Notes under the pieces: model-generated
Databases searched by the model: none
The model's input: the letters and a program-made list of their open reading frames with translations, nothing else
Told to the model about the DNA's origin: nothing
Program-made: the position numbers and the translations under genes
Assembly (NCBI GenBank): GCA_025558095.1
Contig: JAIVFI010000023.1
Coordinates: 434,001 to 498,000 of the forward strand
Reading direction: 5' to 3'
Source of the DNA: Hyaloraphidium curvatum SAG 235-1
Taxonomy: Eukaryota > Fungi > Monoblepharomycota
DNA: 64,000 bases
Shown: in pieces, positions 50,624 to 52,265 of the stretch
How positions within the stretch are numbered: the first letter of the stretch is position 1
Layout of the letters: each line of letters begins with the position of its first letter

Positions 50624-52265
50624 TCAGCAATTGATCTCCGGGTAGCAGCTTGGCGGGCGGTAGCCGACAAACAGTCCGATGTTGACGGCGACGTAGATCA
50701 CTGCAAGGTTTTGTTATTCTCCTTCCCATCAGCTTCTCGCGCAACCCACCGAGAGCAACAACAAAGGTGATCAGCGAAAGCGACACCAGAAAGTCGCGGT
50801 ACGAATCTCCCTTCGCAATCGAGCAAGGCCCGTATCCCCAGCACACCCTTGCAGGCTTCGAAGGAACCTCGTCCGGATCGGAGACGTCGCCATTGATTGC
50901 GACAGCGGTCGTCTTTCGCTGCGACGCCGTGCTGACATGGGGTGACACGGACGAAGCCTCCTCGGCGAAAGCAGCAGCCTTTCCTTCGATTTCGGAGGAC
51001 GACTTCTCCGCGGCGAGTTTTTCCTGCTTGGCCTCGTACTGTATGAGGAGCCATCGTTCCACGATGCTCTCGATGAAGATGAGGCCCACCAAGACCATGG
51101 TAGTGATATTAATGTAGTCCCCGACTGAAAGTGATGTAGGAACTGTTGTGATGGGATGGATGGTAAGCAGCAGGCCCCGTGCAAGAAGAGATGGATGGGA
51201 ACCCACAGCCTAGGAAGGCGTTCAAGGAATTGATGTTGAGCACAACGACGAAGATGCTATGAAGGTGGTTAGCTTCCGCCCGGCGATCAAGAGCTTGTTG
51301 CGTCTCACCTGGCGCCGAGGATGCCCATCCTCGCATCAAAGTGGTCCGTGACGGGGAGAACAAGGGCGCCCAAGCTCATGGCGAAGCTCAAATAAGAGGG
51401 CAACATTATCTGCACAAAATTCGTCGTATCGTCTCGTGCCAATTCGAAAACGATGGTAACGCGGTCAAACTGAGGCACCTGGGAAAGGTACGTTGTGCCA
51501 ATCAGAAAACGATGGTAACGCGGTCAAACTGACGCACCTGAGAAAGGTACGTTTCGCTGTACTCCACGACGCTTCGCAAGACGGTCGGCGGACCGCTGCG
51601 GAGCGCGAGGGCCGGGTCCATCGCAACGTCCGGGGCAACCACGCTGTTCTTGTCGTCGTAGACCAGCTTGAGTGCAGTTGTGTCCGGGAGCGCCTCGATG
51701 ATCAATCGCAGATAGGTCTCGTCGAAGGGATAGTATCTCAGATCCTCGTCGACCCTGATGTGGGGGACATTCGTCGTGGAGAGGTTGGAGTTGGGACGCT
51801 CCCTCTATAGATGCCGCGAGCCTACCTGGCTGTCGCCTGAACCTTCATCGTGCTCCAGTGAACAAAGGCGGGGCCGAGCTGGGCGGCGGGAGGAATCGTA
51901 CGGTACTCCTGGCCCGACACCGACAGGCCTCCCGGCTTCAAGTTGAGGATCTCGACAGTGTCCCAAAGGGTCACGTTTGCGTCGCAGACCATGGTGATCC
52001 ACCCTTCCCAGACCGCGCTGTCGTCCGCGAAGGAGAAGCCGAGCAGAGACATCGTGTACGTCTCGAAATGGCACTCCGTGGCAGTCTCGTTCGTCTGTCT
52101 GGCGGCAATGTCCCGCTGGACAGGTCGACCGGTCTTGCCGGCGTCGCGGCCCACGGCCCCTCGCCGGTAGGCGGCGGCCTCGACCCGCCCCGCCGCCAAA
52201 AAGACGAGGAGGACGAGCAGGGAGGCGCGGAGGAGGAAATCGGGCAGACTTCGGCGGTGTCCCAT
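50624..52265 (-). CDS. Pentameric ligand-gated ion channel subunit, Cys-less (GLIC/ELIC-type), 5 introns
   Basis: Signal peptide; Pro-loop DLRYYPFDETYLRL; pre-M1 Arg (FELAR); M1 FVQIMLPSY; M2 FDARMGILGASIFVVVL; M2-M3 FPTSLSVGDY; M3; long loop; M4. Confidence 0.85.
51436..51553. repeat. Direct tandem duplication, 2 x 59 bp, 4 mismatches
   Basis: 51436-51494 gtgccaattcgaaaacgatggtaacgcggtcaaactgaggcacctgggaaaggtacgtt vs 51495-51553 gtgccaatcagaaaacgatggtaacgcggtcaaactgacgcacctgagaaaggtacgtt. Confidence 0.97.

Follow-up and report, generated by a model that had tools for sequence, protein, structure and literature searches.

The channel gene and its relatives

A gene of six exons lies at positions 52265-50624 of the window (the whole 64,000-nt stretch of Hyaloraphidium curvatum DNA that was analysed), and in our own gene model it has 448 codons plus a stop and five introns, the second of which falls within a tandem repeat (Table 1). 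By homology, the host gene is identified as a Cys-less pentameric ligand-gated ion channel (GLIC/ELIC-like): a profile of the host family matched the GLIC and ELIC structures in the PDB with an E of 3.5e-26, over profile positions 9-329 of 337. The family alignment (A3, obtained by a profile search followed by alignment) was built from homologs, with the joined protein of the window left out, and in it the P, F and D of the [FY]PFD motif were conserved. Database queries consisted of single exons or individual proteins, and exons were joined only locally, for the frame check. The match to homologs extends to the C-terminus, and the remaining five exons are open.

Although the family profile resembles GLIC and ELIC at an E of about 1e-25, the fungal proteins, unlike these two, have no Pfam match when taken alone, and a Pfam search with the exons and the paralogs returned no real match. 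A word search with exon 2 found no homolog, and a metagenome scan gave a single locus (L028), which was spurious. Three GLIC/ELIC-like channel genes are thus present in this one fungus (the gene at 52265-50624 and its paralogs L002 and L003), none of them matched by Pfam; close channel homologs occurred in only a few assemblies, and the other family members were about 20% identical. One of the paralogs is 100% identical to a protein recorded at NCBI for H. curvatum, which belongs to the monoblepharid fungi, an early-diverging lineage. A TPR-repeat gene adjoins the paralog L003 (2320-3162) and homologs in two other organisms, L005 (7652-9076) and L029 (361-1782), being located downstream in L003 and L005, where it is on the opposite strand, and upstream in L029, where both share a strand.

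Two NCBI protein models in this family look mis-annotated. KAI9016126.1 (1114 aa, window 54452-50624) joins an upstream long ORF to the channel gene and omits conserved residues; it uses the donor at 51537 with an acceptor at 51410, 69 nt further on than ours, which deletes 23 residues conserved in homologs, and it is presumably a prediction made without transcript support. KAI9016919.1 reads through the intron of the paralog L002.

The five introns of the channel gene compare with one each in L002 and L027 and with none, over the aligned part of the coding regions, in L003, L005 and L026, and the gene may be gaining introns. Intron 4 (51206-51143) is displaced by 2 nt from the intron of the syntenic homolog L027 (927-1023), and both start with GTGGGT. 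In L027 the intron interrupts a Gly codon after GG, and intron 4 comes one base into the codon that follows; the intron may have slid by 2 nt, or two gains may have occurred independently at almost one site.

Table 1. Positions in the window of the channel-gene exons, the tandem repeat and the predicted splice signals
Feature	Position	Strand	Remarks
Exon 1	51826..52265	-	Hydrophobic N-terminus, start of extracellular domain
Exon 2	51538..51754	-	YYPFD loop to TYLSQ
Repeat copy 1	51495..51553	-	First 16 nt close exon 2; the other 43 nt form the 5' part of the predicted new intron
Predicted new intron (intron 2)	51479..51537	-	GT-AG, phase 0, 59 nt; self-trained gene model; best frame-restoring pair
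Donor GTGCGT	51532..51537	-	+5 G at 51533, derived from C
Putative branch site CTGAT	51501..51505	-	A at 51502; created by GA>TG at 51504-51503
Pyrimidine-rich acceptor ending CCCAG	51479..51490	-	Derived from Leu-Ser-Gln codons; 37th percentile of the genome's acceptors
Repeat copy 2	51436..51494	-	First 16 nt form the 3' part of the intron; the other 43 nt open exon 3, ancestral codons kept
Exon 3	51309..51478	-	Last extracellular-domain strand and first membrane helix; 74% identity to L027
Exon 4	51207..51256	-	Between intron 3 (51308-51257) and intron 4; alignment to homologs
Exon 5	50750..51142	-	Followed by intron 5 (50749-50701)
Exon 6	50624..50700	-	Final membrane helix, then the stop codon; agrees with P0001 and P0002 at the C-terminus

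A tandem repeat of intron length

Tandem Repeats Finder reported an array at 51436-51553 with a period of 59, 2.0 copies, a match of 93% and no indels, and its score of 208 compares with 67 for the next-best array in the window. Alignment of the two copies on the minus strand (51553-51495 and 51494-51436) gave exactly four mismatches in the one assembly available (copy 1/copy 2: T/C at 51541/51482, G/C at 51533/51474, T/G at 51504/51445 and G/A at 51503/51444), and CAG|GT is present in both copies. Pairing the GT at 51537 with the AG at 51479 would remove 59 nt in phase 0, which is one repeat unit, and restore the reading TYLSQ|VPQFDRV, while in unspliced RNA the frame stops at a TGA (51504-51502), so that the CTGAT of the putative branch site doubles as an in-frame stop when the intron is retained. 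From the branch A, 23 nt separate it from the next exon. The original prediction, made from the sequence alone, had described an ion-channel gene with two adjacent 59-bp copies differing at four positions, a CAG|GT in each, the excision of one unit with restoration of the frame, the TGA in the unspliced frame and a CTGAT 23 nt from the acceptor, and all of these were confirmed, the identity of the gene by homology.

The sequence of the predicted intron is that of the start of the downstream exon (43 nt) followed by the end of the upstream exon (16 nt), with an identity of 0.93, and its length equals that of the unit. The scan for introns resembling their flanking exons that had been proposed with the prediction was run on 264 kb, and among 199 predicted introns this was the sole such case; the background of intron-to-flank identity had a median of 0.33 and a 99th percentile of 0.46, and the next-best intron reached 0.55. 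A DNA search of the whole 31.9-Mb assembly found the duplicated DNA at this one place only. Introns 1 and 3 of the channel gene also come after CAG, yet resemble their flanks in nothing, and a duplication origin was rejected for the other four introns of the gene, whose flank identities (0.27-0.31) were those of the background. Elsewhere in the sampled DNA, one tandem repeat unit of 29-30 bp was found at two sites on contig C1 separated by 79 kb (about 183,660-183,810 in L014 and 262,900-263,020 in L022).

Direction of change and strength of the splice signals

The two copies were polarised by comparison with the homologs, in which, for the most part, Pro stands at the CCT of the exon copy and Glu at its GAA. 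Because the homologs keep Pro and Glu, the CGT and TGA of copy 1 are derived and lie within the intron; on this comparison, the exon copy (copy 2) is ancestral and the three changes, all located in copy 1, arose in the intron. The fourth difference (51541/51482) is silent in the exon and exchanges one pyrimidine for another in the intron, and C-ending codons in relatives weakly suggest that C is ancestral there. No derived change was found in copy 2 across the 43 exonic bases.

To score the signals we used a gene model self-trained on 264 kb of the genome (L006-L025 and the window), the training introns of which are themselves predictions. The model converged on 199 introns with a median length of 58 nt, a +5 G in 93% and the branch consensus CTGAY, and it picked the 59-nt intron unprompted. 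Retraining from neutral seeds with the window left out gave a +5 G in 86% and a +5 C in 4%, with GTGCGT as the third commonest donor; the share of predicted introns with +5 G was thus 86-93%, and that with +5 C was 2-4%. Among the donors predicted in the 264 kb, GTGGGT was the most frequent (54/199), ahead of GTGAGT and GTGCGT, and about 69% of donors had a +3 G. The general donor consensus is GTRAGT, beside which the +3 G-rich donors of H. curvatum are unusual.

Under this model, the predicted intron in its present form scored 17.3 bits, at the 54th percentile of the other 198 introns, as compared with 6.3 bits and the 5th percentile for the reconstructed state just after duplication. The claim that three of the mismatches strengthen the splice signals was therefore supported with a splice model trained on the genome itself. 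In the reconstructed state the donor stood at the 9th percentile and the branch at the 2nd, and it contained no CTGAY, the branch motif most enriched in the genome; at present, the donor, branch and acceptor stand at the 79th, 43rd and 37th percentiles, and the length of 59 nt is close to the median of 58 nt. Judged by its sequence, the predicted intron lies within the genome's range for U2-type introns in donor, branch, acceptor and length. The starting site was already favourable: by the sum of its donor and acceptor scores it ranked among the top 9% of 294 AGGT sites in exons.

Of the 177 possible single changes, the +5 C>G gains most and the branch G>T takes 4th place, after which the A>G adds a further 1.8 bits. 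By exact enumeration, 141 of 877,743 triples of changes gained as much (1.6e-4, or 5.7e-5 with a transition bias), and a model-free version (+5 G plus any branch-like motif) gave 3.6e-4; these values are uncorrected for how many coding duplications the genome holds and for the choice of a case that resembles an intron. The placement of the three mutations suggests that selection acted on them, and changes so well placed argue against an assembly error or a pseudogene.

Probable origin of the predicted intron

Recency of the gain, as originally proposed, was supported, as was the expectation of a single copy without the intron in orthologs and paralogs: both were found at the site in two paralogs in the same genome (L002 and L003) and in three genes of a relative (L005, L026 and L027, run SRR26194948), all of them distant homologs (26-74% identical by exon), which for this reason show the absence of the intron and give no date for its gain. 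L027 is syntenic: a heme oxygenase gene some 4 kb away from it is 61-81% identical to the one that adjoins the channel gene of the window. In the tree, L027 groups with L026 (97/97). The divergence of the copies amounts to one change per roughly 59 neutral site-lineages, or about 0.02 per site (95% range 0.0004-0.09), a value that conversion between the tandem copies could make look too young. As a single change lies off the signals, and is silent or neutral, the duplication event appears young. Two other sources were rejected: an introner or transposon, since the DNA was found once in the assembly and the intron derives from its own flanks, and multiplication of a pre-existing intron or boundary, since the whole unit is coding sequence in the homologs.

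It seems highly improbable that the repeat is an artefact in which one true copy was doubled by a consensus error or by the joining of haplotypes. The DNA was seen in one assembly, exact look-ups of eight ORFs of the window having found no independent one, and diploidy has been reported for the phylum (PMC9457484). However, an artefact should have produced identical copies or random errors, whereas four indel-free substitutions were found, three of them on splice signals; a haplotype join would moreover need an allele with a stop codon and a local divergence of 7%, and the duplicated DNA is single-copy in the assembly. We give just as little credence to use of the donor mainly with another in-frame acceptor, at 51410 (128 nt, that of the NCBI model) or 51470 (68 nt). 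The acceptor at 51410 is the stronger one when scored alone (7.6 as compared with 5.8 bits), and the 68-nt form would cost just three more residues, but the totals for these pairs are lower (15.5 bits for 128 nt and 13.5 bits for 68 nt, against 17.3 bits for 59 nt) and their branch support is weaker. The 128-nt form would also lose, among its 23 residues, an Arg that at least 90% of the 84 family members share, and the new branch site is spaced for the AG at 51479, the first AG past it.

Somewhat less far-fetched, but still very unlikely, is a real duplication that broke the gene, leaving a young pseudogene buffered by two paralogs, with splice-like mismatches that arose by chance. Such a reading would agree with the frameshift and TGA of the unspliced form, with the presence of the two paralogs in the genome and with the NCBI model, whose fusion with the upstream gene suggests little transcript support. 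Against it, the chance of such placement is about 1e-4 to 4e-4, the six exons showed no further lesion, and copy 2 has kept its 43 exonic bases free of derived changes.

A rival with a small though appreciable probability accepts that the intron is spliced and questions whether plain duplication of an exon with CAG|GT produced it: a single repair event could have lost 12 nt and copied both flanks, or an older intron could have been lost first, leaving CAG|GT behind. The channel gene is four residues shorter in a loop than its three closest homologs (L027, P0004 and P0015), the aligner put the gap at the junction, and in Daphnia exon loss and intron gain have been seen together (PMC4202315). 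On the other hand, the 12-nt gap can be placed anywhere from 0 to 6 nt from the junction, and it fits equally well 6 nt upstream, where L026 has Ser-Glu-Ile-Pro and this gene Ser-Gln-Val-Pro; the 12 nt are absent from both copies; and the length of the loop varies in the family (5, 6 or 9 residues). Given that the gap is movable, that the loop is variable and that neither copy has the 12 nt, the simplest explanation is a separate deletion that came earlier. The branch to the relatives is also long (0.33 changes per site) and the duplication very young, and none of the homologs has an intron at this site. Since the gene is shorter near the junction, we infer the single-copy CAG|GT precursor allele only indirectly, and none was present among the homologs compared, all of which are distant.

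With either history, we consider it very probable that the locus carries a spliced intron made of duplicated exon sequence. The reading we prefer, and regard as probable, is that a tandem duplication recently produced a precise gain and that selection then improved the splicing. Gain in this way would have started from an intronless exon with a CAG|GT behind a pyrimidine-rich run, as the homologs and both copies indicate, and a 59-bp segment spanning the CAG|GT would then have been duplicated head to tail, the arrangement seen in the assembly; 59 nt is within the modal intron size class of the genome. The first GT would have paired with the second AG to take one unit out, weakly to judge by the scores, given a poor donor and no proper branch, and unspliced RNA, being frameshifted, would have been cleared by nonsense-mediated decay, as expected from known biology (PMC2809761). 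The +5 C>G and then the branch GA>TG would have been fixed in the intronic copy, every step being uphill in score, to result in an intron of average strength; the changes themselves are observed and polarised, and selection would be the force that fixed them. Collapse of the present repeat to one copy would restore the protein in 21 of 60 registers, change Pro to Arg in 29 and introduce a stop in 10, so that with 39 of the 60 registers now harmful the intron would tend to be locked in.

The model of Rogers, under which 188 tandem-duplication intron events have been reviewed, many imprecise and with latent sites (PMC3443670), was re-enacted in cells in 2011 (PMC3265369), and cases of gain by tandem duplication are known from fission yeast, Drosophila, teleosts and potato (PMC3629103, PMC2891723, PMC3265369, PMC4974935). 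Three features expected of this model were found here: the tandem unit holds AG|GT, the intron has the sequence of its flanks and the length of the unit, and the homologs are single-copy and intronless. In common with the reviewed events, an exonic AG|GT supplies donor and acceptor, and the intron has the length of the unit; excision would restore the reading frame, with a protein four residues shorter near the junction than in the closest homologs. Many of those events are imprecise and use latent sites, whereas the H. curvatum case is precise and purely exonic, with copies 93% identical. The vertebrate ATP2A1 intron and the ATP2A2 re-enactment (PMC3265369) involve the same mechanism, but the natural ATP2A1 event is more than 420 million years old and its source inferred, while in H. 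curvatum, a case of predicted splicing, the copies and signal changes can still be read. The freshly duplicated ATP2A2 exon was spliced weakly, in about 6-16% of mRNA (PMC3265369), which agrees with the weak starting state proposed here.

SPOG_01682 and SOCG_00815, both fission yeast genes (PMC3629103), likewise contain fungal introns of repeated exon sequence, with non-identical copies and a proto-splice site in the unit. ESTs support these introns, which extend over several in-frame repeats of 24 nt that carry AGGC; in H. curvatum, by contrast, a unique sequence was duplicated once, over 59 nt and with a frameshift, and the signal changes are polarised. The tandem-duplication introns of Drosophila (PMC2891723) and the model backed by nonsense-mediated decay (PMC2809761) share with our case a proto-splice junction, a premature stop if the intron is retained and weak signals that strengthen, although they rest on residual proto-splice signals or population-wide statistics, while here the improving mutations can be listed singly. 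A recent tandem duplication also made the intron of the potato RdRp gene (PMC4974935); there, however, the unit was an existing intron-exon boundary and the signals were inherited, while in H. curvatum no earlier intron was involved. The original remark that clean natural examples are few is right for gains that are precise and can still be recognised, though gain by tandem duplication as such is an established mechanism (PMC3265369; PMC3443670, 188 events).

The mechanism is thus known, and what distinguishes this case is that unique coding sequence was duplicated once, precisely and with a frameshift, that the duplication is still 93% intact and that its few changes can be polarised and lie on the signals. 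In the literature searched, with most subscription papers falling outside the search, we found no polarised, mutation-level case of intron birth and nothing on nuclear intron gain in Hyaloraphidium. To our knowledge, the source of most newly gained introns is untraceable, and models in which introns start weak and are later strengthened draw mainly on statistics pooled from many introns. In this gene the starting sequence survives in the exon copy, so that the state before, the present state and the three mutations linking the two can all be given, and the weakness of a tolerated newborn intron and the gain per step could thereby be measured directly. We tentatively suggest, as a conjecture that may well fail, that H. 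curvatum repeatedly gains introns through tandem duplications that span AG|GT and have the size of an intron (50-60 bp); such introns would start weak, climb to the consensus by a few selected mutations and then be held because collapse damages the protein. If this recurrent route is true, the genome of H. curvatum would be a replicated series on how newborn introns mature.
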